Shown: positions 14,816 to 60,202 of the stretch, one piece after another | Layout: every line of letters begins with the position of its first letter | How positions within the stretch are numbered: the stretch's first letter is position 1 | Assembly: GCF_001194135.2 (NCBI RefSeq) | Contig: NC_068984.1 | Location: 82,095,949-82,159,948, forward strand | Source: Octopus bimaculoides | Lineage: Eukaryota | Reading direction: 5' to 3' | DNA length: 64,000 nucleotides | The notes under the pieces: generated by a model | Told to the model about the DNA's origin: nothing | The model's database searches: none | Seen by the model: only the letters and a program-made list of their open reading frames with translations | Program-made: the position numbers and the translations under genes

Positions 14816-16259
14816 TTATAATGACATTATCACAGCACAACTCTGTAGGTCACTCTCTAACATTGTTTTGCTGTTCTCAATCCAAATTTTCTGCACATCT
14901 TCATATCTGAAAATTTTGTCCTTACTTAAGCAGTGAATTCTCCTGCAACAAAGAGTATGTCTTGGCTTGGGCCAAAGTGTTTTGGATTTATTCATAGAAT
15001 ACTTGAATTTCACTTTCATTTACATCAGTAGTTGGAGAGTAAACCTAGAGAAAAGAGATGTTAAAAGCTGTAGCTTTGATATGAACATATGTAAGTCTCT
15101 TATTGGTTGGTTGATATAAGATCATACTGTGTGATGCTTCTCATGAAAGGATGGCTCATGCTCTTGCTTCATGCTGTTCTTTTAAAATTATGATTAGGTT
15201 ATCATCTGCTGCAGTGAAATGTCCGGATTTGGTCTAATGTGTATCTACAAAGCCAAATATGGTGATTTTACATATTCTCGTTTCTTGAGTGATCTTATAT
15301 AGTTTTCCTGCCTGTTATAATGTACATTCCAGATACCTATATGTGTGCTTTTCCATAGAGTGGTTCTGCTTTGATCTCCTCTCATATAAGCAGCAGACCT
15401 TTTGTTGGGCAGTGCTGAGCCTGATGCATCTACAGTTGTGTTGAGGTCTCTACAGTGAGATCTCTCTCTTTTCCAGTAGCAATCACAACAGCAGGCCTCC
15501 TGTTGATTCCAAGGCTACTGTCCATCTCTTGAACTGTGCGATGCAGGATTTCCATGATACATGCTGAGTAGCATTAAATCAGAGGGTCCTGTGTACTCTT
15601 CTGTTGACATTTGGTTGTTCTTCCACAGGACCACCAGTGCTCAGTTGTCATGATGTTGGTCTGTTGGCATGTGTCCCTTGAACTAGTACCATAGAGTATA
15701 GCAGGGTTTTTCCCCTAAATCCATTGTATTCTATACTTCCAACTGAGTCACCTCGAGTGGGATGTGGCACTTCACCACGTACAATAGTTTTTATTGTGGA
15801 GAGGCTGCAAGTGTGCCTTCAGGCTTCACTAATTACAACACACCTGACTCCTAAAGTTTAGGTAGAATTACCAAGTGGTGGATCCATCAAAGGTTTGCTT
15901 GTGATCACTCTACGCAGCCCTGCTTACTACACTGGCTGCTCTCCACTCCTGACTCCCAATGTCCAGGTAGAACTGGAATACACCCAGCTTTGGGGCACAA
16001 CCTATTGTGTGTAATATAAGCAAACAATTAAGCACAGAGTGAATATGCTTGGATCATAAATTCAATAGTCTACATGAAGTCATTGAACTTTTACTGAATT
16101 TATGACCAGGGTAGAAGTAAAGAGTAGAAGCACAGTAAATTCAATGGATTCTGATTTAGATACAAGGGATGCAGTTTCGAGTAAAGACTGTAATAAATAA
16201 ATAAATATAGCTTAACGGGCGGAGAGTCTCACTCTACTTTTCTTACTGTATAAATATTG

Positions 16260-16472
16260 GTTTCAAATTTTAGTACCAGGCTAGCAATTTCGGGGGAGGG
16301 AGTAAGTCGATTACACCAACTTCAGTCAACTGGTATTTATTTTATCGACTCCAAAAAGGATGAAAACTAAAGTCCACCCCGGCAGCATTTGAACTCAGAA
16401 TGTAAAGACGAACGAACGACCGCTTAGCATTTTTCCCGGTGTACTAACGATTCTGCCAGCTCACTGCCTCGC
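16260..16472 (-). mobile_element. tRNA-derived SINE (family C) with a perfect 19-bp target-site duplication
   Basis: Head GAGCTGGCAGAATCGTTAG, B box GAGTTCAAAT; TSD TCTTACTGTATAAATATTG at 16241-16259 and 16473-16491. Confidence 0.9.
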
Positions 16473-16858
16473 TCTTACTGTATAAATATTGAACGAAAGA
16501 AAGAGCCTACGCATTGAAGAGAATCTTAATTTGCAATGTGGAGGATTTTAACTCTCGTGAGTTAAACAAGAGAGCGGAAAATGTTAAGAAGGTAATATAG
16601 AGGAGACGCAAGGTATTTAGAGGCGAGTGGGGGTCGTTTTCCTTAGAGAATATTTAAACCAGACCCAAAACTTATATTTTAAAAGCATTTAAAAAGTATT
16701 CCTGGGTATTAGAATAACAATTAGATATGACGAATGTCAAGATTCAATATAATTTCATCGTATGTCCTCATCTTTGGTAGACAGGACAGACGCGGCTTTG
16801 GCCATAGGTTTGGCTGATCAGTAGTGACCGGAGCTAAACAACAACTTTAGAAATATTA

Positions 16859-17062
16859 ATTTCAAATTTTGGTACAAGTTCAGAAATCTGGGAGGAGTGG
16901 GTTAGTCGATTACATCGACTCCAGTGTTCAACTGGTACGTATTTTATCTACCCCGAAAGGCAAAGACGACTTTGGCGGAATTTGAACTTGGAACGTGAAG
17001 ACGGACGAAATGGTGCTAAGCATTTTATCCGGCGTGTCAACGATTCTGCCAGCTCGCCCCTT
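16859..17062 (-). mobile_element. SINE family C with a 19-bp TSD (1 mismatch)
   Basis: AACAACTTTAGAAATATTA at 16840-16858 and AACAACTGTAGAAATATTA at 17063-17081. Confidence 0.88.
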
Positions 17063-17223
17063 AACAACTGTAGAAATATTATATGGAAACAAAATTTGCT
17101 TGCGATCATTTATTTATACTCATTCATTGACTTGACAAACAAAATCAAATTAACCTTACGATTTACAAAAATCAAAACCAGTAAGCGATTAGTAAACAAA
17201 CAGTTTCCACTATTTTGAACAGC

Positions 17224-17320
17224 GCGCCAAATAAACTAAATAATCTTTCAACTAAATGTGCAAACAAAAACAAAAAAAAAAGAGTAGTTACGAAACTGAG
17301 TTCCTGAATCAGTTTCCCGC
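17224..17320. promoter_or_regulatory. RPE proximal promoter region with two E2F-consensus octamers
   Basis: GCGCCAAA (reverse complement of TTTGGCGC) at 17224-17231 and TTTCCCGC at 17313-17320 both fit TTTSSCGC, within 115 bp of the ATG. Function is not shown. Confidence 0.4.
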
Positions 17321-17337
17321 ATTCAGCACTACTAATA

Positions 17338-17580
17338 ATGGCGGCTTCTTCGGGATACACATGTAAGATAGGCCCGTCTATTCTTAATTCTGATCTCTCA
17401 TCTTTATCCGAAGAATGTCAACGAATGATGAATTGCGGTGCAGATTACTTGCACCTGGATGTGATGGATGGCCACTTCGTACCGAACTTAACTTTTGGAC
17501 ATCCCGTTGTCAAGTGTTTACGACCGAAAGTTCCCAATGCATTCTTTGACATGCACATGATGGTTGCCAACCCCGAAAGG
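17338..17580 (+). CDS. RPE: Ribulose-phosphate 3-epimerase exon 1 ([20 protein letters not shown]...[16 protein letters not shown]...[11 protein letters not shown])
   Basis: Hallmark RPE motifs [16 protein letters not shown] and DMHMM with metal ligands H, D, H. Donor AGG|GTCTGA, phase 0. Confidence 0.97.
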
Positions 17581-19880
17581 GTCTGAGCGATGTATTTCTT
17601 TGTTAATTTATTTTATTAATTCTTTGAACTCTGTCTGTGTCTCTCTTGTAGTTTAGAATATTTTGTCTGACGATATTGTAACTTGCCTGTTTACTATTAT
17701 AAAGTTTTATTTTGTCATTTTCTTGATGACAACAATTGTTTTTGTTAGCTTACCATCGGGATTAATTCAGCAGGCTTATGATTAGACATTCCGTTTGTGA
17801 CCAGCAAGTCTCTTTTTTTTACCTCCCTTTCATTTTTTAAGCATATTTAGACTATATTGCACATTTTTCATCTTCTAAAACTGTGATTTGAGAAAACTTT
17901 GGCTGCTGTTTCTACCCAATAGAAGGACCATATGGGGGCCTATTTCTTTTATTAAAATTCTTATGAATTCTTCAGTAGACAGTGCACATGAGCTTTTTAA
18001 AACCTCTAAAACTGGTGGGAAGAAGTTATCGGAACTGATTGTTTATATCACGAGACAAGCTCAACCTTGATCAAAGTAAACCCTATGACCATAGACATTC
18101 CTTCCATATTATCCAATGTGCTCTGTGTTTAAAATTATGGGATGTAAGTTGTGGAAGATTTCAGACAGATCGAGTGACCTAGTAGCTCAATTTGATTCTT
18201 ATTAGTTAGTCATCATCTAAGAGAGCGAGAGAAAGAAGCGATGGTGGTGTAAGACGTCGAGAGAAAAAAAGGAGAAGCGGTAGCGTCTGACTCGTTACTC
18301 TCCTTGCTCATTCAGTGTCGACGTTTCCTTTCATCCATTCGAAGTCGATGAAATAGCTACCACTCGGCTCTAGATTATACTGGAAGTAGGAAGCCGTTAT
18401 TTCGTCTTGTTACAAGACTTGCACTTGTTATGTATTTTGTTTTAGTTTTTTTTTTCTTGTTAATGGCTCTTTGGGGGGGGGGGACTAAAAAAATTATTAC
18501 TATCATATGCACATGGTTACTTCGCTAATTAGTTCGACCCCGAAAAAGTGTATGGGCAGTAAATCCATAAAGGCAATATTGGAATTCAGTAAAGAATGTG
18601 TAGGTAAACACAGCAAAATATTTTGTTTAATCCATCGATTCCGTAAATCACATGGCCTGAAATTTTACGGGGAGGAAACAATCAGTTATATGGAATCCGA
18701 TATATGACTGGTACTATTTTATCAACTTTCTGACAAATGAAAGGCAAAATCGACCTTGGTGGAATTTGAACTCTGAATGTAGAGTCCTAGCATGCCATTT
18801 TGTACGACGCTCTAACAATTCAGTGTCATTGTACCTGGCATGTGTGTCTAAATTCATCTGGTGTAACATTTCATTTCTCTAGTATCGATGTGTACAAGTA
18901 CGCTAAAAAAAATCGACCCCTCTATTTGAATGAGTTCTTTAAATCCATTTAATTTCCAACTAATATTTTGGAACCACTTCAAAATCCAGGCTAAAATTTT
19001 CCTTTCTCTGGGAATTTTTGTAGCAAGGGAGATTACTCTTCCTTACTCACAAATTGATGTGAAAATTTTATCATGCTCAACATTGTAAATACAATCAGAT
19101 TTATTGGATTTTAATTAGAAATCTGTTTCCAAATCCAGACTTAATGAATTGATTTAAATGGCTCAGCTGCAGTTATTCTAAACTATATCAGCATGTCTCG
19201 GTTGTATTTGTAAAAGAGATACGTTTTCACAACTATAGATCATTGTTTTGATCAAAGAAGCTCTTTCTAAGACACTACTTAGAAACAAATTACAGACTTT
19301 TCAGTAAGTCAACATCCCGTTAATTTTAACATAGCAGTAGATTTTAATTTCCCCTCAATCTATCTACTGTGTGTATAGATACCATAGTAAATTGTTGGTC
19401 ATACTGGATAATGTGATCTGAGATAAACTTTGTTTGATAAGATGAGATGCCTTAATCATAGGTCTGCTGAATCCTTGAGTTAATCAATAATAAGCAGTGA
19501 CATAGCATTTTTTTGGACTATTATGAAAGGTAGTTTCTATGTTGATGATGTTATCAATGAAGTTCTGTTTAATATTTTTTGTTTCTCTTCCAAATGACTT
19601 GTGGCACCTAAAGCTCTAATACAACTTCTTGTATCATTAGTTTCTACAGCAGTATGTACTTAAAGGAATCACAATTGAAACAACATTCAACTCTCCTTGT
19701 AGCTGGAGAAAAATGTGTCATCTCATGAGGAGAGATGAACACAGCCCTGAGGGATGATGAAACAATTCTCAGTATGAAAGTGCAGTTGCAGCTAACAGCA
19801 GTGAGCTGTAGTAATCATTCACCTTGTGGTATCTTCTTACAGCTAGGTGAACTTGATCGTTAACAGTTCTACAGTTCCAA

Positions 19881-20349: not shown

Positions 20350-20548
20350 AACTGTTCAAAACTTATTTTATCAACCTTGGCAAGATAAACGATTATGTCA
20401 ATTCTTGTGAGATTTGAGCTGCAAACTATGTATAATTAAATATGTTTAGCAAAAAAAGTTATTGCTCAACTATCTTAGCCAACCTCACTTCACTCTTTTA
20501 GTGTGTTGCCTTAAAGATCTATAATTTGCCTTTAATTTTCTCTTCTAG

Positions 20549-20656
20549 TGGGTAGAAGGTATGGCAGATGCAGGTGCAAATCAATATACCTTCCATATAG
20601 AGGCCACTGACAATCCTGAGGACTGTGTGCGCAAGATCAAAGAATCAGGAATGAAA
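20549..20656 (+). CDS. RPE: RPE exon 2 (WVEGMADAGANQYTFHIEATDNPEDCVRKIKESGMK)
   Basis: TTTTCTCTTCTAG acceptor and AAA|GTAAAT donor; AGANQYTFHxEA motif; 108 nt, phase 0/0. Confidence 0.95.
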
Positions 20657-21316
20657 GTAAATTGATATTTGTTTCACTTTACACTTTTTATATATATATA
20701 CCCTAACCCTAATTTTTATATACTATGAAACCCTATTTTACCTGAAAATTTCCTGAAACAAAATTACAAACTACTGGTTTCATATTTCATATATTTTCTT
20801 TCCTTCTCGTGTTTTACATGTTATTATTATTTTCTTTATCAGTTATAGCATAGCTACTATGGATTTTGTTGAAATTCTAAATTTTACATTTAAACAGTGG
20901 GGTCAAAGTGGAATCTGTTGTAAATCAGTCAAACTGATTACAATCAGTTTTGTTGTCCTAATACACAGCACAATAGCCTTATTATAGTTTGATTTTTCTG
21001 GCCAAAGGTCAAGTACTTTAATGTCACTGACATGGACTTACAATGACCTTATTAAACGTTGGATTAAACATTGATAAACAATTATCAAAATATGGTATTT
21101 AAATAATTTCCAGTTTCTGAAGCTTGCTGAGTAGCTTAAAGATAATCAGTAAAACTTTGAGGCACTAATAGTGTAATGTAAGAGTAATAATATCATTACA
21201 AAATATACAGTAAAATGCTTTTTTTATGGACTATTGTTAGATTAAATTTTCCTTTCACTCATATCCTTTATATTGGTTTTCTTGTAAATGTATTTGTGTT
21301 TCTGCTTTGCTTTCAG

Positions 21317-21451
21317 GCTGGAATAGGTATGAAACCAAATACACCTATAGAAACAGTGCTTCCTTATGTACATATGGTTGATATGGTCCTTGTAATGACA
21401 GTGGAACCTGGCTTTGGTGGGCAGTCATTTATGAAAGAGCAAATGTCAAAA
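21317..21451 (+). CDS. RPE: RPE exon 3 (AGIGMKPNTPIETVLPYVHMVDMVLVMTVEPGFGGQSFMKEQMSK)
   Basis: TTTGCTTTCAG acceptor and AAA|GTAAAG donor; VMTVEPGFGGQ substrate-binding loop. Confidence 0.96.
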
Positions 21452-21719
21452 GTAAAGATTTTTCTCTGTATTACTTGAAAATTTAAGAGCAGTATAATAG
21501 AAGTGATTGACAGAATCCAACTCTAGATGAATGAATAGATATGTAACTCCGAAACAGTGCACTGTGGCATGCTGGTGTGCTAGGAATGTCTTGGTGCTCC
21601 TATGGATTAAAAAAATATATATGATTTAACACATTAGAAATTCCATACATGAGTGCCTTAAAATAATCTGTTATTCATTAGTTTATGTGCATAGCTAGGT
21701 ATGAGGGTGGTGGTGGTGG

Positions 21720-21925
21720 TGGTGAATTGGCAGAATCATTAGAGCATTGCGATATTTTCTTGGCTGTCCAGATTCTGAGTTCAAATCTCACCACAGTCAG
21801 CTTTGCCTTTCATTGTTTTGGGGTCAGTAAAATAAAGTACCAGATAAGTAATGGAATCAGTGTAATCAACTAACCATCTTAACTCCAAAATCACTAATTT
21901 TGTGCTTAAATTAGAAATCATCATA
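21720..21925 (+). mobile_element. Diverged SINE family C in RPE intron 3
   Basis: GAATTGGCAGAATCATTAG...GAGTTCAAAT...GCCTTTCATTGTTTTGGGGTCAGTAAAATAAAGTACCAG. Confidence 0.7.
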
Positions 21926-22233
21926 TATAAGTACAACTATGAAAACAAGGTATGCAATGATTTTCTATACTTTTAATCTTAAATTTTTAACTTTCAAACA
22001 GTATTTTGTTTTAAATTGCCATATGTGAGCCAAGTGCACTGTAAAATCAAAATGATTGAGAACTACTGGAATAGAGTAAGAGATTTGTTTAATAAGCCCT
22101 GTAACTCAGAGAGAGACGAAGTGCAAAAAAATTGGGTTAGAAATTGAATGTTAGAGGCATTGAAATCTCTATGCAATATATTTTAGGCAGTGTTGAATAT
22201 ATTTCAATCAAATTGTTTTTGTCCATTCTAAAG

Positions 22234-22320
22234 GTGCGGTTACTTAGAGAGAAATTCCGTGAGTTAGACATTGAGGTTGATGGCGGCGTTGGAACTTCTA
22301 CTATTAAAGACTGTGCTGAT
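22234..22320 (+). CDS. RPE: RPE exon 4 (VRLLREKFRELDIEVDGGVGTSTIKDCAD)
   Basis: TTCTAAAG acceptor and GAT|GTAAGC donor; IEVDGG motif with the catalytic Asp. Confidence 0.96.
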
Positions 22321-22863
22321 GTAAGCAAATATGACTTCTTATTTTATGCTGTTGGATACTATACCATTTGTTATATTTGCAGGAGGTAATACTGAATGAT
22401 AATGTGAGAGACCTATCACACTGATGACACTTGCACTACATCATAAGCACCAAAATATATCATAGTTTAGATTTGGCATGAGCTCTAAGGCTCGTAAAGA
22501 TGGATCTTAACTTGCTCTCCATGGCTTATAAGTGACTGAGATTATTAAACCTCAGAATGGGATGCCAGCCCTTCGTATGGTTAACTTCCCAGCTATTGTT
22601 GCAACTTGTTTACAGCTGAGTGGGATGGAGTAACATGAAATAAAGTGTTTTGCTGAAAAACACAGAATTAAAACTACAATCTTACAATCATGTGTGAAAC
22701 ATCCTAACCACTAGACCATGCATCTACACACCAAAATATAAGTTCTGAGCTACATTTAGTTATCTATGGCTCACAGTTAAGCTGTAAGGATACTGCTTAA
22801 TTGCCGAGTGTTGTCTGAGCTTGATGTACTGGGCTCAAACCTCTAAAAGCATGTTTGGATTAC

Positions 22864-23078
22864 TTAACCCTTTTTATACCAATCTGCTTGAGATTGCTTG
22901 TTGGTTCCGAAATATAAACCTGTTCTAAAATGATCTAAATTAAAAACATTTCATGTTAATTTATATTCCAAACACCAAGTGAATAATGACAAAATTATTT
23001 TACTAAATTTTTCATTGTTTTCAAAATAAATTGAAACAAAAGCAGTATATTGCAATAGAAATATGACAACAAGGTTAA
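22864..23078. mobile_element. piggyBac-like MITE remnant
   Basis: TTAA-CCCTTT at the left end and AAGG-TTAA at the right end; a similarly structured element lies at 62999-63251. Confidence 0.5.
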
Positions 23079-23406
23079 AGGAGAGAGGTGGATACTTCTC
23101 AAGTAATATTATTAAATAGATGCTATAAATAAGAGTGTCAGGTGCATCACAAGACATTCAATCAATCAATCATTTTTTTTTCTTTTATTCTTTCACTTTA
23201 CTGGTTTCAATCATTGAACTTTGGCCATGCTGGGACATCATCTTCTAAGGTTTTTAAACAAGAACTTTATTGATCCTTAATGAAATCCAAAGTTACTGTT
23301 TTTACTATACAGTGACACAACACTAGTAAACATAAACACAGACGCAGACGGACACACCTATATACACACACACACACACACACACATATATGATATATAT
23401 ATATAT

Positions 23407-23474
<68 letters not shown>

Positions 23475-24368
23475 GGCTGTCCACTTGTGACCGAGGAAGA
23501 CCATTGCTGACCTTCAGGAACATTGTGCACTCTAGGACTAACTTATATGTTGCATTTTGCGGTTCTGCTTGTGGCTAATGGTTTGGATGATTTAAGAGAA
23601 GATTGAACTAATGTCTGCTTTGGCATGGTTTCTGTGACTGGATGCTCTTCCTGATGCCAATCACTTTACAGAGCGTTTATGTACACCACAGACTTCTGCA
23701 CATTTTCTCTTTACCAAACTCTACTCACAAGGTATTGAGCAATTTAGACCTACATTGAAGAGACTTGCCCAGGGTTCTACACTGTGGTATTAAACCAGGA
23801 ATTCTGTGGTTCCAAAGTAAACTTATTAATCACAGTCATGCCTTCTACTATATAACATTTCATATGGAATGTCAGATTTCTGTTTTTAATTTTTAGAACA
23901 TTTTGTAAACGTTAGTGTGTGAAGAATTTATTTTTGTTAAAAAGTAAAATGGAAAATGCTGATGTATGTTCCTTCTCCAAAAGTATAAGGATGTTAGTAA
24001 AACTCTTCTAACTCAGAATGATACTCAAGCAACTTAGTTCACCAAGAAGACTACCACCTGCTATGAAGTTGCACCAAAAATATTAAACTCTTTTTCTTCG
24101 GGATTACATGATCTGAGTATGCATACTAATGTGTCTACTGCTTTTGGTGGATCTGACCTAGAAATCCAGCACTGCATCTAACACACAAGCTACATACAAA
24201 ATTCTGTACTATTGCATTATCCTGCTTAATGCTGATAATCTGCATCTTCTTTGAACTCTGCATCAGGTGTAATCAGGATTCTTGTTCACTTGTGACTAAA
24301 TCCAAGCATAAAATGATGTCTCCAGTGTGTGTGACTCAAATATTTGAAATACACACACAGGTGTGCAC

Positions 24369-24469
<101 letters not shown>

Positions 24470-24687
24470 TACACATATATATGAATAGTTTATTAAGAAA
24501 CTTTTAGTTCTACCTAGTTGTTTTTGTCATTAAGGAATACCTCTCTTTGGAGGACATGTTCATAACATATGCAATTCACCTGTGAAAGGGATGTGTTATA
24601 GACACATCATCTAAAGGGAAGAGGTGTTCTCTGATGCTTGCATGGGTCAGATATATATATATATATATATCATATTATTATTATAAT

Positions 24688-25410
24688 TATCATCATTTAA
24701 CATCCATTGTCCATGCTGGCATGGGTTGGACGGTTTGACCAGGGCTGGAAGGCTGCACCAGATTCCAGTCTGATTTGGCATGGGTTTTTTACAGCTGGAT
24801 GCCCTTCCTAATGCCAACCACTCTGAGAGTGTAATGGGTGCTTTTATGTGCCACTGGTACGGGTGCCATTTGCGTGAAACCAGTATCCACTACAACTGTG
24901 ATTTTACTGGGCTTGATGGGTCTTAAGCATGACATAATGCCAAAGGTCTCGTTCATTGCCTCCGTAAGGCTCAACACTCAAAAGGAACTCAGCCACTTTG
25001 CCTCCCGGGAGCCCAGTGCTCAAAAGGAACCCAGCCCATTTACCTCTATGAGGCCCAATACTCAAAAGGTGCTCTTTACGTGCCAGTTATGCGACACCAG
25101 CATCAGCCATGACTACAATTTCACTTGGCTTCGCACGTCTTCTCAAGCACAGCATATTGCCAAAGGTCTGTCACTAGCCATTGCCTCTGTGAGGCTCAAA
25201 GTTCCTGGGTCTACCTCTACCACAGGTTCCCTCCACAGTTAGATATTGGCACTTCTTTACACAGCTGTCCTCGTCCATATGCATCACATGACCATACCAG
25301 TGCAGTCGTCTCTCTTGCACACCACATCTGATGCCACTTATGCTTACTTTTCTCTCACCTCCATTACTAACTTGGTCACCTAGATAAGGGAAGCTATCTA
25401 CAACCTCTAG
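24688..25410 (-). mobile_element. Internally deleted family-B LINE 3' fragment in RPE intron 4
   Basis: LEVVDSFPYLGDQVSNGG is fused directly to ...GIRCGVQERRLHWYGHVMHM...GRGRPR, followed by 3' UTR subrepeats and an (ATG)n tail. Confidence 0.85.
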
Positions 25411-25572
25411 CCTTCCCCCTCCCCCCGTTGATGGAGATATATGTATTTCTATGTGTGTAAATGTGTGCATGTATGCACACAAAAATGCTCTTTTGTACAT
25501 GTATGCAAACTTACAAACAGAATTAGTACTTCATTGCTTTTTGTTAAAACCTTTTAATTTCTGTTTGTCTAG

Positions 25573-25695
25573 GCTGGTGCCAACATGATCGTCTCAGGCA
25601 GTGCCATCATCAATAGTGACAATCCACGTCAAACTATTAACTTCTTACGAATGACAGTGGAAGAAGCTATTCAGAAGAGTCAACTAGAACGATAA
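25573..25695 (+). CDS. RPE: RPE exon 5 (AGANMIVSGSAIINSDNPRQTINFLRMTVEEAIQKSQLER-stop)
   Basis: TTTCTGTTTGTCTAG acceptor; AGANMIVSGSAI phosphate-binding motif; TAA at 25693-25695; AATAAA at 25977-25982. The joined CDS encodes 231 aa. Confidence 0.96.
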   Translation, partial: AGANMIVSGSAIINSDNPRQTINFLRMTVEEAIQKSQLER

Positions 25696-26256
25696 AGGAT
25701 ACAACAATCATGCTACTTGAAGTGTTACCATTCCACATGCTTTTAGGACATTGATCATACATCTACCTAACTTGCTACGAGATTTCCCACTAAACTGTCT
25801 TTTCCATTGTGTGTACAACTTTATCATGTCGGTTGTCATGTTAGTGACATTGTTAGCTGTCACCTTCATACATCCTTGATTTTATGTGATTTATTGATGT
25901 CTTGTTTTCCTACAAACATGCTCAAGCTACTGGTTGGTCTATAAATGTTGGTCAATTTGGAGACTGATTTCAGATTAATAAATTCCATTGCTTAGCTTTA
26001 TTGCATTTGCTATTGCTTTTCTTTCTTTCTTTCTTTTCCTTTTTTTTCTACCAGTTTAAGTCATTGGACTACAGTATAGTGAGTTATATGACAACAATAC
26101 TTAGTCTAGTACTCGTATTAGCAAACTGTAGTTTGTGAATAGCTACAATTGACATTAGTTACCTCCCTTGTACAGTCGTAATTATCAGATGGTATTTATA
26201 TGGGTATTCACCATCAGGTAGATGTCCACGTGCACATACACATGCATACCTGTCTG

Positions 26257-57047: not shown

Positions 57048-58437
57048 AATAGGAAACTCCACCCAGGAGCGACCAAGGAAATTCGAGGATTCCGAATCAC
57101 CCTGTTCACCAGGAGTACCATGGCAAGTACTCCTCTAGCTTTCGTACTTTTCAGCCTACAGGCGCATGCTTAGAATAGGTCCATTTACACGGGCCATTAT
57201 CGCGACATTCGCCCACCTTTTAACAAATTTACTGGCGGGTATAGTAATGAATCTTTTATATTACAAATTCAAAAGTTAGTAACATGTATTAAATTACTAT
57301 TTTGGTCTAACGGTTAAAAAAAAATTTTTTTTCTTATATGTCTTGTTAAAGACTGCAGCGGAGGGCTGTTTCAAATTTGAACTCGGGTAAAATTTTGCTC
57401 GCGGGCCAAGTTCTCATCTCTCAAATAGAGGTTCCCGTGTGTTGTGTTCTTATGCATCAATATTGTTTCTTATATTCTTTAAAAAAAAAATTGTTATCTT
57501 TATCAGTTTACCATCAGAAAAAAAAATTACATTGCAAAATGAGAACAGCTACAGATAGACTAGAGAAATGGACCCGACTCCCTTGAGAAGAAACAAGCAC
57601 AAACTGTCAAGCTGAAATTAATAGATACCTAGTAGAAAGTGTATATGTGTGTATGTGTGTGCATGTGTAACTATGCGTGTTTATGCGGGTTAACGTATAT
57701 GTGTTGTGTGATTGTGTGTATATGTGTGCTAGTGTAACTGCGTATGTATATGTATATATGTGTGTATGTATGTGTGTACGTGTGTGCTGTGTGGTTGTGT
57801 TTGTGCTTATGTGTGTGTGTGTGTGAGTGAGTGAGTGACAAAGCTGTTTTCCCCTCAGTCGTGTATGTATTAAACCCTGTTTGTATAAGGCACAAGAAAG
57901 CTCCTCCCATGACTGCTAAAACCACATTGAAAACGGATGGTAAAGAAAAAGAAAGGAAAGCAAGAATGACGGAAGAGAAATAAAGAGAGAGTAACTGGTA
58001 CTGGTAGTGTGATACAGAGAATGAGAGAGAGAGAGAGAGAAACAAGAGAGTAGGGACAAGATCGTTCGATAGTGAGTGAGTGAGTGAGAGAGAGAGAATG
58101 AAAGAGAAGGAAAGGGACAGATAAAGAATAAGAGTTTATGATAAAAAGACAATAAACAAATGAAATATGAGAAGTCAACTTGTATGATTCTTTGAATTAC
58201 ATTTGAATTTTTAGTATCAAACCTCCTCACTAGTTACTGCGAAATCAGCTGAAACGATCATATTTAGCAAAGAAAGCTGTTAGCAGTTAAGTGTAACTTT
58301 CGATATTTCGGCGAACTTCAACTATCTTCATTAAAAAAAAAAAAGATACTTCAGTCCTTTCTAAACGCGTGTGTGTGCGTGTATATGTATATATGTATAT
58401 ATGAGTGCACGTGTTTATTTACCTCTCCTAAACGGTA

Positions 58438-59655
58438 ATGTCAACAGCAGTTGACACAAACACCGATTCCAATCGAACAGTTGTTTTATCGTCGAGACCA
58501 AAATCCCTGGAAGAATGTATTTCGAAATTCGATCATGAACTTGAACTTGAATCCGACAGCGAAGCTATATACTGCAATGTTACGACAGATAGTCTCCTTT
58601 GCTGGCCAAGAACTCCTGCCGGCACTACAACAAGCCAACCTTGCCCTTCATTGGAAGGGTCGGATACAACCAAATTTGCTTATCGTAGCTGTGACTTAAA
58701 TGGGGAATGGAGTTCGAAGTGGGATGACGATTCGTCCGCTTGGACAAACTACACACAATGTTACAGTTCCGAAGCTGAACTAATTTTCCAGTTTGATTCA
58801 GAAAATATACGAAAAGCATCAGCTGAGGATTTAACGGATTCCAGTATCCTGGGAATATGTGGATTGTCCATGTCATTGCTAGCCATTTTCTTTACCCTTG
58901 CTTATGTGCGCTATAAAAAATATAGCGGACCGCGTATGGACGTCTATAGAAACTTATTCGCAACACTGGTTCTCGAAGCATCTGTGAAACTATCATTTCA
59001 GATTATTCTTTTAATGGTATGGCTTGAAGACGGCCTCGTTGTTACTGTGTTCGATATTCCACACCTTTGTGAAGTATTCGTTGTAATTTTGGAATTTGCG
59101 GAGATTACCACCTATATTTGGACAGCTCTTCATGGACACCTGAGTTACCTGGAAGTGAAACAATACGATCCTTTAAAAGTGCAAGTTCTCTACGCAGTTC
59201 TAGGATGGGGTGTGCCGATTATTACCTTGGCTGAGTGGTTAGCAGTGCAAACAGCGACCAACGACGCTCCCTGTTGGTATGGTTACCGTTTCCAACAAAG
59301 CGCCTGGATTTTGGAACTACCTCGTGTGTGGGCCTTAATATGTTCACTGGTATTTCTAGCTTACACAATCTGGTCTCTAAACGAGACTGGACACATGAGA
59401 GACATCAGCGAAGTACACATGATCAAGCGTAGTACACTAGCGTGTCTCGCCTATATTTTCTTCTTAACTATGTCCTTATGTACATCTTTAGTACTGGCTA
59501 ATCTAGCACACAACAGCATCAACAAGATGCATTTATTAGCTTTAATCTACACAATTACATTCCTCACCTCTTTCAGAGGACTGTTTTTCACAATCGGCTA
59601 CTGGCTATGGGAAAACCAAGGAAGGAACTGGTACCAGAAAGTCAGTTTGGTTTGA
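58438..59655 (+). CDS. Single-exon, divergent class B1 (secretin-family; CRF/DH44-receptor-like) GPCR, 405 aa
   Basis: Uninterrupted ORF. Hormone-receptor domain with six Cys and D/W/P/G/W (ECISK, YCNVTTDSLLCWPRTPAG, QPCP, RSCDLNGEW, WTNYTQC). Seven hydrophobic segments, TM4 GWGVP, TM3 Cys and ECL2 CW. Confidence 0.9.
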   Translation: MSTAVDTNTDSNRTVVLSSRPKSLEECISKFDHELELESDSEAIYCNVTTDSLLCWPRTPAGTTTSQPCPSLEGSDTTKFAYRSCDLNGEWSSKWDDDSSAWTNYTQCYSSEAELIFQFDSENIRKASAEDLTDSSILGICGLSMSLLAIFFTLAYVRYKKYSGPRMDVYRNLFATLVLEASVKLSFQIILLMVWLEDGLVVTVFDIPHLCEVFVVILEFAEITTYIWTALHGHLSYLEVKQYDPLKVQVLYAVLGWGVPIITLAEWLAVQTATNDAPCWYGYRFQQSAWILELPRVWALICSLVFLAYTIWSLNETGHMRDISEVHMIKRSTLACLAYIFFLTMSLCTSLVLANLAHNSINKMHLLALIYTITFLTSFRGLFFTIGYWLWENQGRNWYQKVSLV

Positions 59656-60202
59656 AGATTAATCCTTGTGTTTATTGTATGTTTGAATTATTTTTTTAAA
59701 TCCTGTTTATTGACACCAATATATATATACATACACATACCAAAATACATACATACATACATACATACATACACATACAGATAGATAGACAGACAGATAG
59801 ATAGATTACTGCAGTTATATTATGTATATTATTGTTAATTCTGTTCATTCACACATCCACGTCCGAGCACGCTTATACTGGGTTGTAGACCTGATCTATC
59901 GCCCAAGTGTAACACAAACACCTTGTGTGCCTTTAGCAGAATCCATTCTGTTGTATTTGAGCCAGGTTCACATTTGTGTATAACTCGATATCCCTGGTGC
60001 GGCCTTCCCTCTTCATTAACCCACGAGTCGTGGTTTTCTCCTCTAGTCAACCCCCACTCCATTAGTCTCGGAGACACTTAAAAGGGGTCACTGATATTGT
60101 CCCACTTTTCTTTGATGAAATCTTTAAAAAATATTTTGTTGTCTGGGGAAAGTCATTACACCAATTATGATAAAACACGCACAGATTCACTTCCAGTTTT
60201 TA

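Follow-up and report, generated by a model that had tools for sequence, protein, structure and literature searches.

The 64,000-nucleotide stretch of Octopus bimaculoides DNA considered here (contig NC_068984.1, positions 82,095,949 to 82,159,948 of the forward strand; referred to below as the window) carries a gene for a class B1 (secretin-type) G-protein-coupled receptor (GPCR). Its open reading frame (ORF), at 58438-59655, runs unbroken from ATG to stop in a single exon and encodes 405 amino acids; the only other long ORFs in this AT-rich, gap-containing animal sequence are retrotransposon remnants. The receptor keeps the hormone-binding ectodomain and the seven-transmembrane (7TM) fold of its class, while the elements by which class B1 receptors are activated have been replaced, and it shares this syndrome with a set of bivalve and gastropod proteins. 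The exact protein is already deposited in NCBI and UniProt, and its cluster mate is XP_029635728.1, "PDF receptor-like [Octopus sinensis]." Automatic names clash even within a single 90%-identity cluster, in which the 405-residue O. sinensis protein is "PDF receptor-like" and an O. vulgaris entry, a truncated 287-residue model, is "calcitonin gene-related peptide type 1 receptor isoform X1."

Membership of class B1 is confirmed by domains and fold. Pfam HRM is matched over residues 45 to 110 with 61.1 bits (cut-off, 26.2) and 7tm_2 with 72.9 bits (cut-off, 20.6), the latter a low score for this family. The best solved relatives are the glucagon receptor (GCGR; 1e-20), CRF1R (1e-17), and then the calcitonin receptor (CTR). 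An AlphaFold2 (AF2) model built on a 22-sequence alignment (mean pLDDT, 75.4; pTM, 0.63) comprises an extracellular domain (ECD) with an N-terminal helix and two beta hairpins, seven transmembrane (TM) helices, and a weak 7-residue helix (398 to 404) after TM7, and every top match to it in Foldseek is a full-length class B1 receptor at probability 1.0. The initial annotation of this locus had described an unbroken 405-residue frame with the structural signature of the class, and all of that signature was confirmed: the six ECD cysteines (C27, C46, C55, C69, C85, and C108), the ECD fold residues D51, W56, P70, G89, and W91, the disulfide pair between TM3 and extracellular loop 2 (C211-C279), the GWGVP motif (G256-W257-G258-V259-P260), and the seven TM helices. 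The cysteines, the fold residues, the disulfide pair, and GWGVP are invariant among the cephalopod orthologues, and the ECD has sequons at N47 and N104.

The N-terminus holds no signal peptide (maximum Kyte-Doolittle 19-residue mean, −0.13), and residues 1 to 19 are modeled with a pLDDT of <50. An ectodomain of ∼125 residues, disulfide bonded and glycosylated, would then need TM1 as a signal anchor for its translocation. Most atypical molluscan relatives likewise have no signal peptide, their start codon lying a few residues before the ECD helix.

Table 1. Features of the window, with the receptor gene and its parts first
Feature	Position	Strand	Evidence or remark
Receptor coding sequence	58438-59655	+	Single exon, 405 codons plus stop; ORF listing, Pfam HRM and 7tm_2
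N-terminal 21 residues, hydrophilic, fastest-evolving part	58438-58500	+	Kyte-Doolittle, pLDDT, dN/dS
ECD hormone-receptor domain, residues 22-112	58501-58773	+	HRM, invariant columns, AF2, dN/dS 0.12-0.28
TM1, residues 129-160	58822-58917	+	AF2 helix, pLDDT 79-93
TM2, residues 165-196, with R166 (2.46), Y170 (2.50), E180 (2.60)	58930-59025	+	Alignments, AF2
TM3, residues 208-240, with C211, T225 (3.43), H232 (3.50), L235/S236	59059-59157	+	Alignments, AF2
TM4, residues 245-274, with GWGVP 256-260	59170-59259	+	Alignments, AF2
TM5, residues 289-320, with S303 (5.50)	59302-59397	+	Alignment, AF2
TM6, residues 323-358, one unbroken predicted helix, with F341, T344	59404-59511	+	Alignments, AF2
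TM7, residues 363-392, with R380 (7.49), G381 (7.50), Y388 (7.57), W389-L-W-E392	59524-59613	+	Alignments, AF2
13-residue C-terminal tail	59614-59652	+	Alignment; last four residues V-S-L-V at 59641-59652
Microsatellites directly bordering the receptor ORF	58366-58410, 59720-59810		
Ribulose-phosphate 3-epimerase exons	20533-25752	+	∼33 kb upstream of the receptor
Non-LTR-retrotransposon-type run of long ORFs	38195-41598	-	
Cys/His-rich ORF	38195-38845	-	Within the run
Reverse-transcriptase-like ORFs	39294-41072	-	Within the run
Endonuclease-like ORF	41140-41598	-	Within the run
Seven N runs (assembly gaps)	∼1.9-2.4, 9.4-9.8, 36.2-36.8, 43.4-43.9, 44.2-44.5, 45.9-46.5, 48.4-48.9 kb		Mostly bordered by TG/TA/CT microsatellites

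The activation core was compared with that of the class at large. An exhaustive HMMER search through 1.84 billion representatives supplied 145 class B1 sequences, which were aligned with MAFFT, and Wootten positions were anchored on a mammalian glucagon receptor in the set; substitutions were read both from this alignment and from the HMMER pairwise alignment to GCGR, and the two agree. Relative to glucagon receptors, H2.50 is replaced by Y170, E3.50 by H232, N5.50 by S303, and Q7.49 by R380. The PxxG hinge is absent, P6.47 being F341 and G6.50 being T344. At the helix 8 junction, C7.58 has become W389, N8.47 has become E392, and E8.49 has become Q394, and the canonical YCFxNxEV gives way to YWLWENQG followed by only 10 more residues. 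These are the replacements that the initial annotation had listed by eye, and both alignments bear them out. Beyond them, the central polar network is altered at further positions, with E180 at 2.60 (Arg, Gln, Lys, or the like in canonical receptors) and T225 at 3.43 (canonically Asn) in addition to R380, and L235/S236 replace the canonical Y3.53/L3.54. R2.46 (R166), G7.50 (G381), and Y7.57 (Y388) are retained.

Position 6.42 is ambiguous: it is C336 in both alignments but T333 if the octopus RSTL is matched locally to the canonical KSTL. A firm retention of T6.42 by way of this match was rejected, as the register is offset by three residues in the HMMER and the MAFFT alignment alike. With either residue, the HETx ground-state motif is lost (Y170, H232, C336 or T333, and Y388). 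The parts that HETx, PxxG, and the central polar network play in class B1 activation have been described: HETx is a ground-state lock whose mutation leads to constitutive activity, PxxG is the source of the TM6 kink, and the central polar network links the peptide N-terminus to the transducer side (PMC10166269). Since about 110 of the 145 class B1 matches carry the full canonical motif set, including His and Glu at 2.50 and 3.50, the combination of substitutions in the octopus receptor is far from what chance would give.

The intracellular end is equally unusual. The protein extends 17 residues past Y7.57 and 13 past the point where TM7 is predicted to end, close to the 12 or so of the initial annotation. 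Among 105 canonical receptors, the median number of residues after Y7.57 is 111 and the minimum is 21, and none has 20 or fewer. All cephalopod orthologues finish with the same C-terminal sequence, QKVSLV, which, like E180, T225, and the absent signal peptide, was not part of the initial annotation. Its end (-S403-L404-V405) matches the class I PDZ-binding consensus (S/T-x-hydrophobic), and other atypical members end differently. One atypical subgroup of six sequences, including that of the freshwater mussel Potamilus, has the C-terminal pattern R-R/K-I-S-x-Q-E-L-V-P ... E-E-N-E-L/V. The sequences suggest that each atypical subgroup may possess its own intracellular docking signal.

Several lines of evidence show that the gene is selectively maintained under strong purifying selection. 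First, orthologues are present in another Octopus species (98% identity), in Argonauta hians, where the gene is annotated in the genome (83%), and in two more distant species (69% and 66 to 71%), which, judged by divergence alone, are cephalopods and probably decapodiforms. The unusual residues are identical in all five cephalopod sequences, except that 5.50 is Gly in the more distant pair, so that octopods and more distant cephalopods possess orthologues with the same substitutions, which the initial annotation had named as support for its reading. Second, dN/dS (Nei-Gojobori) is 0.066 between the window and its 98% identical relative, 0.097 between the window and Argonauta (dS, about 1.0), and 0.061 between the two more distant orthologues (dS, about 1.35), with synonymous sites saturated between the octopods and the distant pair; Fisher tests of replacement versus silent changes gave P values of 5e-20 to 7e-74. 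Third, constraint is distributed by domain. The 7TM region (dN/dS, 0.03 to 0.05) is more constrained than the ECD (0.12 to 0.28) and the first 44 residues (0.3 to 0.7), the C-terminal tail has accumulated synonymous changes and almost no replacements, and no change has occurred in the intracellular loops and C-terminus across lineages whose synonymous sites are saturated.

One contig of a distant relative has a 2-bp TG duplication at ∼1080-1085, immediately after the RFQQSA codons, which breaks the frame; the frame downstream is open. Pseudogenization on this basis was rejected because the intact 401-residue protein is found on 13 other contigs, and the duplication reflects either a rare allele or a mistake in sequencing or assembly.

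The orthologue group stands far apart from other sequences: in the exhaustive search its own 50%-identity cluster scored 868 bits and the next protein 169 bits. The best canonical matches are PDF receptors of insects, a spider, an annelid, and molluscs. In profile searches PDF receptors reached 190 bits (E = 2e-50), compared with an E of ∼1e-12 for DH receptors. Subfamily hidden Markov models (HMMs) of the ECD gave 87 to 97 bits for the PDF receptor (PDFR) clade, 81 to 93 for the atypical molluscan set, 77 to 90 for other canonical receptors, 66 to 75 for the glucagon/cluster B group, and 44 to 62 for the DH clade; the corresponding scores for the transmembrane domain (TMD) were 96 to 103, 126 to 135, 103 to 108, 65 to 79, and 67 to 69 bits. 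To judge from these scores, the gene is, among canonical receptors, closest to the PDF receptors rather than to CRF/DH44 receptors. A CRF/DH44 affinity, raised by the CRF1R match among solved structures, was rejected, as profile searches and ECD-only HMMs favor PDFR and the PDB contains no PDF receptor. The ECD HMM and profile scores thus displace the CRF/DH44/ELH-type ligand favored by the initial annotation, which is no longer the best guess, and PDF/cerebrin, which occurs in all mollusc classes (PMC6425005), would be the first candidate.

The gene is nevertheless a paralogue rather than an orthologue of PDFR, because molluscs (Haliotis and Lymnaea) possess canonical PDFR-like genes in addition to atypical ones. 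Both PDFR and PDFR-related genes have been reported from octopus (PMC7200681). In a neighbor-joining (NJ) tree of 128 sequences and 386 columns (simple distance, 200 bootstraps), the gene falls in a separate atypical clade, apart from the PDFRs, with deeper nodes receiving <20% support. Cephalopod sequences group in 100% of replicates, and cephalopods together with 19 atypical bivalve and gastropod sequences do so in 99.5%.

The wider clade shares more than its place in a tree. The motif survey yielded about 25 other sequences with the same syndrome, i.e., no PxxG, loss of N5.50, and Arg or Lys at 7.49, in proteins of 361 to 451 residues with tails of 11 to 44 residues; those named include members from Mytilus, Mercenaria, Potamilus, Haliotis, Gigantopelta, and Nucella. 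When the entire clade served as the profile query, with candidates selected by words, few sequences were added (Mercenaria, Nucella, and one further sequence). On the TMD HMM of the atypical set, the cephalopod proteins score ∼30 bits higher than on that of any canonical group. An acidic residue at 2.60 combined with a basic residue at 7.49 occurs in 16 of 24 atypical members, all cephalopods included, and in none of 109 canonical receptors, which have Arg, Gln, His, Asn, Ala, or Lys at 2.60 and Gln (rarely Glu, Asn, or Leu) at 7.49. The automatic names of these relatives are "PDFR," "PDF receptor-like," or "secretin receptor-like."

Because long branches can make distance trees misleading, gene structure was taken as an independent character. 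One exon holds the entire coding sequence in the window and in Argonauta, Mercenaria, Haliotis rufescens, and Mytilus californianus, whereas a canonical Haliotis PDFR-like gene spans 174 kb in multiple exons. No poly(A) remnant or target-site duplication is visible in the flanks of the receptor, and their loss is expected because retroposition would predate the split of the mollusc classes. Taken together, the identity of the receptor, its maintenance by selection, and its membership of the atypical clade are very probable. It is also likely, although less firmly so, that a single retroposition of a PDFR-type mRNA before the conchiferan classes split was followed by divergence beside the canonical gene.

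The initial annotation had described the receptor as lineage specific. This stands for the orthologue group itself, which appears from its sequences to be confined to those of cephalopod type. It does not stand for the redesign: bivalve and gastropod PDF receptor-like proteins share the core, the short tail, and the single exon, and the redesign therefore predates the cephalopods and is mollusc-wide. In the literature searched, no earlier account was found of the atypical core or of secretin-type receptors without introns in molluscs, although one may exist elsewhere.

The neighborhood of the receptor is partly conserved but rearranged between the window and Argonauta hians. Exons of a ribulose-phosphate 3-epimerase lie upstream of the receptor in the window (Table 1), and in A. 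hians the epimerase (contig 16215-19496, minus strand) lies 5 kb downstream of the orthologue on the opposite strand.

Of the known systems, the PDF receptor (Drosophila PDFR/Han and its protostome orthologues, whose ligand is PDF, or cerebrin in molluscs) is the canonical family with the best profile scores. The octopus ECD scores as high on the PDFR-clade HMM as on that of its own clade, and the octopus xWTNYTxCY before the sixth cysteine recalls the G-W-T motif of PDF receptors (PMC3961327). Unlike the octopus protein, canonical PDFRs have H2.50, E3.50, N5.50, PLLG, Q7.49, and YCFLNGEV, with tails of 33 to 290 residues and multi-exon genes. An orphan group named "PDFR-related" or "PDF-like (unc4)," including Caenorhabditis elegans SEB-3 and lophotrochozoan members, is a PDFR-allied secretin-type group reported from octopus, brachiopods, and annelids (PMC7200681, PMC8557429). 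Lophotrochozoan studies have recognized "PDF-like (unc4)" as an orphan group (PMC8557429), and published inventories of family B receptors in molluscs include PDFR and "PDFR-related" for octopus and "PDFR" for bivalves, with activation motifs and gene structure not analyzed (PMC7200681). Cardoso et al. did not find PDFR-related members in bivalves (PMC7200681). That many bivalve members fall in the atypical clade argues either that this clade differs from the PDFR-related group or that the same sequences have been named differently.

Two further systems offer analogies. In the atypical chemokine receptors ACKR1 to ACKR4, the ligand-binding parts are intact, the G-protein switch motif has been lost, and selection maintains the gene; however, these are class A receptors, homologous to the octopus protein only as 7TM folds, and have phosphorylatable arrestin tails, in contrast to the octopus tail of 13 to 17 residues. 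The vertebrate receptors PTH1R, CRF1R, and VPAC1 end in PDZ ligands, with a long, regulated tail separating the motif from a canonical Gs-coupled core. The octopus C-terminus likewise conforms to S/T-x-hydrophobic (-S-L-V) and is a putative PDZ ligand.

We postulate the following mechanism. (i) The ectodomain would still capture the C-terminal part of a peptide, PDF/cerebrin-type peptides being the first candidates. (ii) Glu180 (2.60) and Arg380 (7.49) would probably form an ion pair between TM2 and TM7 that replaces the central polar network and fills the site where the peptide N-terminus normally triggers activation; the pairing is proposed because these positions lie side by side within the central polar network in solved class B1 structures. 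(iii) With the HETx lock replaced by Tyr170/His232, no PxxG, and helix 8 nearly gone, the sharp kink of TM6, by which canonical class B1 receptors open their Gs pocket, would be impossible, and since hinge, lock, and most of helix 8 are missing, canonical Gs-type opening is unlikely. (iv) The protein would instead pass a conformational or scaffolding signal inward through a PDZ scaffold, possibly engaging a G protein in a way not typical of class B1. The constrained 7TM region and intracellular loops 2 and 3 (ICL2 and ICL3), together with the -S-L-V end, would point to specific intracellular partners rather than an inert ligand sink.

Our best guess is thus a peptide-binding receptor that may have a non-canonical output and may be anchored by its invariant C-terminal -SLV PDZ-type motif. 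More broadly, we tentatively propose an undescribed, class B1-derived molluscan subfamily that arose as one ancient PDFR retrocopy, exchanged the polar network for an ion pair of Glu or Asp with Arg or Lys between TM2 and TM7, and discarded PxxG, HETx, and helix 8. The mechanistic steps are possible rather than probable. For the explanation as a whole we would give a probability of about 0.45, a figure that blends identity, origin, and mechanism. If the proposed subfamily is real, the secretin-receptor fold accommodates a different activation architecture, and the subfamily could signal without the TM6 kink or could serve specifically as a modulator or co-receptor in PDF/cerebrin signaling, with the cephalopod member also tied to PDZ scaffolds.

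Several observations weigh against this explanation. The tree is an NJ tree computed from simple distances with long branches, so convergence or long-branch attraction remain formally conceivable, and by HMM scores the ECD alone does not separate the atypical from the PDFR group. The residues at 2.50 and 3.50 vary widely within the atypical clade, which has no single, clade-wide replacement network. The E180-R380 contact is predicted from homologous positions only, and the confidence of the AF2 model is only moderate (pLDDT, 75; pTM, 0.63); an unbroken TM6, as in that model, is also expected of a canonical receptor in its inactive state. Class A and adhesion GPCRs lack PxxG yet couple to G proteins, and the loss of class B1 motifs is therefore no proof that G-protein signaling has been lost. 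Finally, the short public contigs examined for expression gave no transcript evidence: all end in microsatellites or poly-T, without poly(A), and they were judged to be genomic fragments rather than transcripts. The unmatched 5′ 177 nucleotides of one of them have no match anywhere in the window.

A non-signaling decoy, scavenger, or co-receptor, in which the ECD binds peptide and the 7TM region serves as an anchor or as a modulator of canonical PDFR or another class B1 receptor, comparable to an atypical chemokine receptor or a receptor-modifying partner, would account for an ECD that is intact while every canonical G-protein activation element is gone and for a very short tail without a Ser/Thr cluster for arrestin-type regulation. 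A canonical PDFR paralogue does coexist in molluscs (PMC7200681). A passive anchor, however, would not be expected to evolve under stronger purifying selection than the domain that binds the ligand, nor to keep invariant intracellular loops and an invariant C-terminus, although a heterodimer interface could explain this invariance as well, and we consider this alternative somewhat unlikely.

Unlikely, too, is a neuropeptide receptor of essentially conventional type, coupled to Gs or Gq and probably responding to PDF/cerebrin, in which the replacements are tolerated and TM6 moves more gently, as in class A or adhesion receptors. The retention of R2.46, G7.50, Y7.57, GWGxP, and the disulfide is consistent with such a receptor, as are the strong constraint on the TM core and loops and the coupling of other GPCR classes without PxxG. 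It must nevertheless accommodate the joint replacement of at least 10 positions at which ∼110 canonical class B1 receptors hardly vary, among them contacts of the G-protein pocket (Y3.53, L3.54, N8.47, and E8.49), and the absence of most of helix 8.

Loss of the HETx lock could also have produced a constitutively active receptor, permanently "on," whose output is set by expression level and PDZ-dependent localization. Mutations of H2.50 or T6.42 cause such activity in PTH1R, GCGR, VPAC1R, and CRF1R (PMC10166269), and both 2.50 and 3.50 are replaced in the octopus receptor, but constitutive activity in those receptors still requires the PxxG hinge and G-protein pocket, both of which are altered here, and a conserved, intact ECD would be superfluous in a receptor that needs no ligand; we regard this possibility as quite improbable. 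A decaying retropseudogene, or a misannotated fragment without its upstream signal-peptide exon, would fit the single exon, the missing signal peptide, and the one frame-broken contig but is effectively refuted by dN/dS values of 0.06 to 0.10 across lineages with saturated synonymous sites, by a full-length frame in every species examined, including the one with the broken contig, and by a start site immediately ahead of the ECD helix that orthologues have in common with distant atypical relatives, in agreement with the initial annotation, which had already argued against pseudogene decay.

The finding is relevant both to GPCR mechanism and to mollusc neuroendocrinology. Class B1 has been treated as mechanistically uniform, and its HETx motif, polar network, and PxxG hinge, near-invariant from insects to humans, are the basis for activation models and drug design. 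The atypical molluscan clade has retained the hormone-binding domain and 7TM fold under strong selection, apparently from a time before the mollusc classes split, while replacing these parts, and nature has thereby tested which other uses the fold allows. The names "PDF receptor-like," "PDFR," and "CGRP receptor" given to its members mean that counts of mollusc PDF receptors may mix canonical and atypical proteins, and circadian and neuropeptide inferences for cephalopods may do likewise. If the atypical receptors modulate or sequester PDF/cerebrin, a conserved peptide system would gain a further level of control; if they signal by themselves, they would define a new mode of activation.

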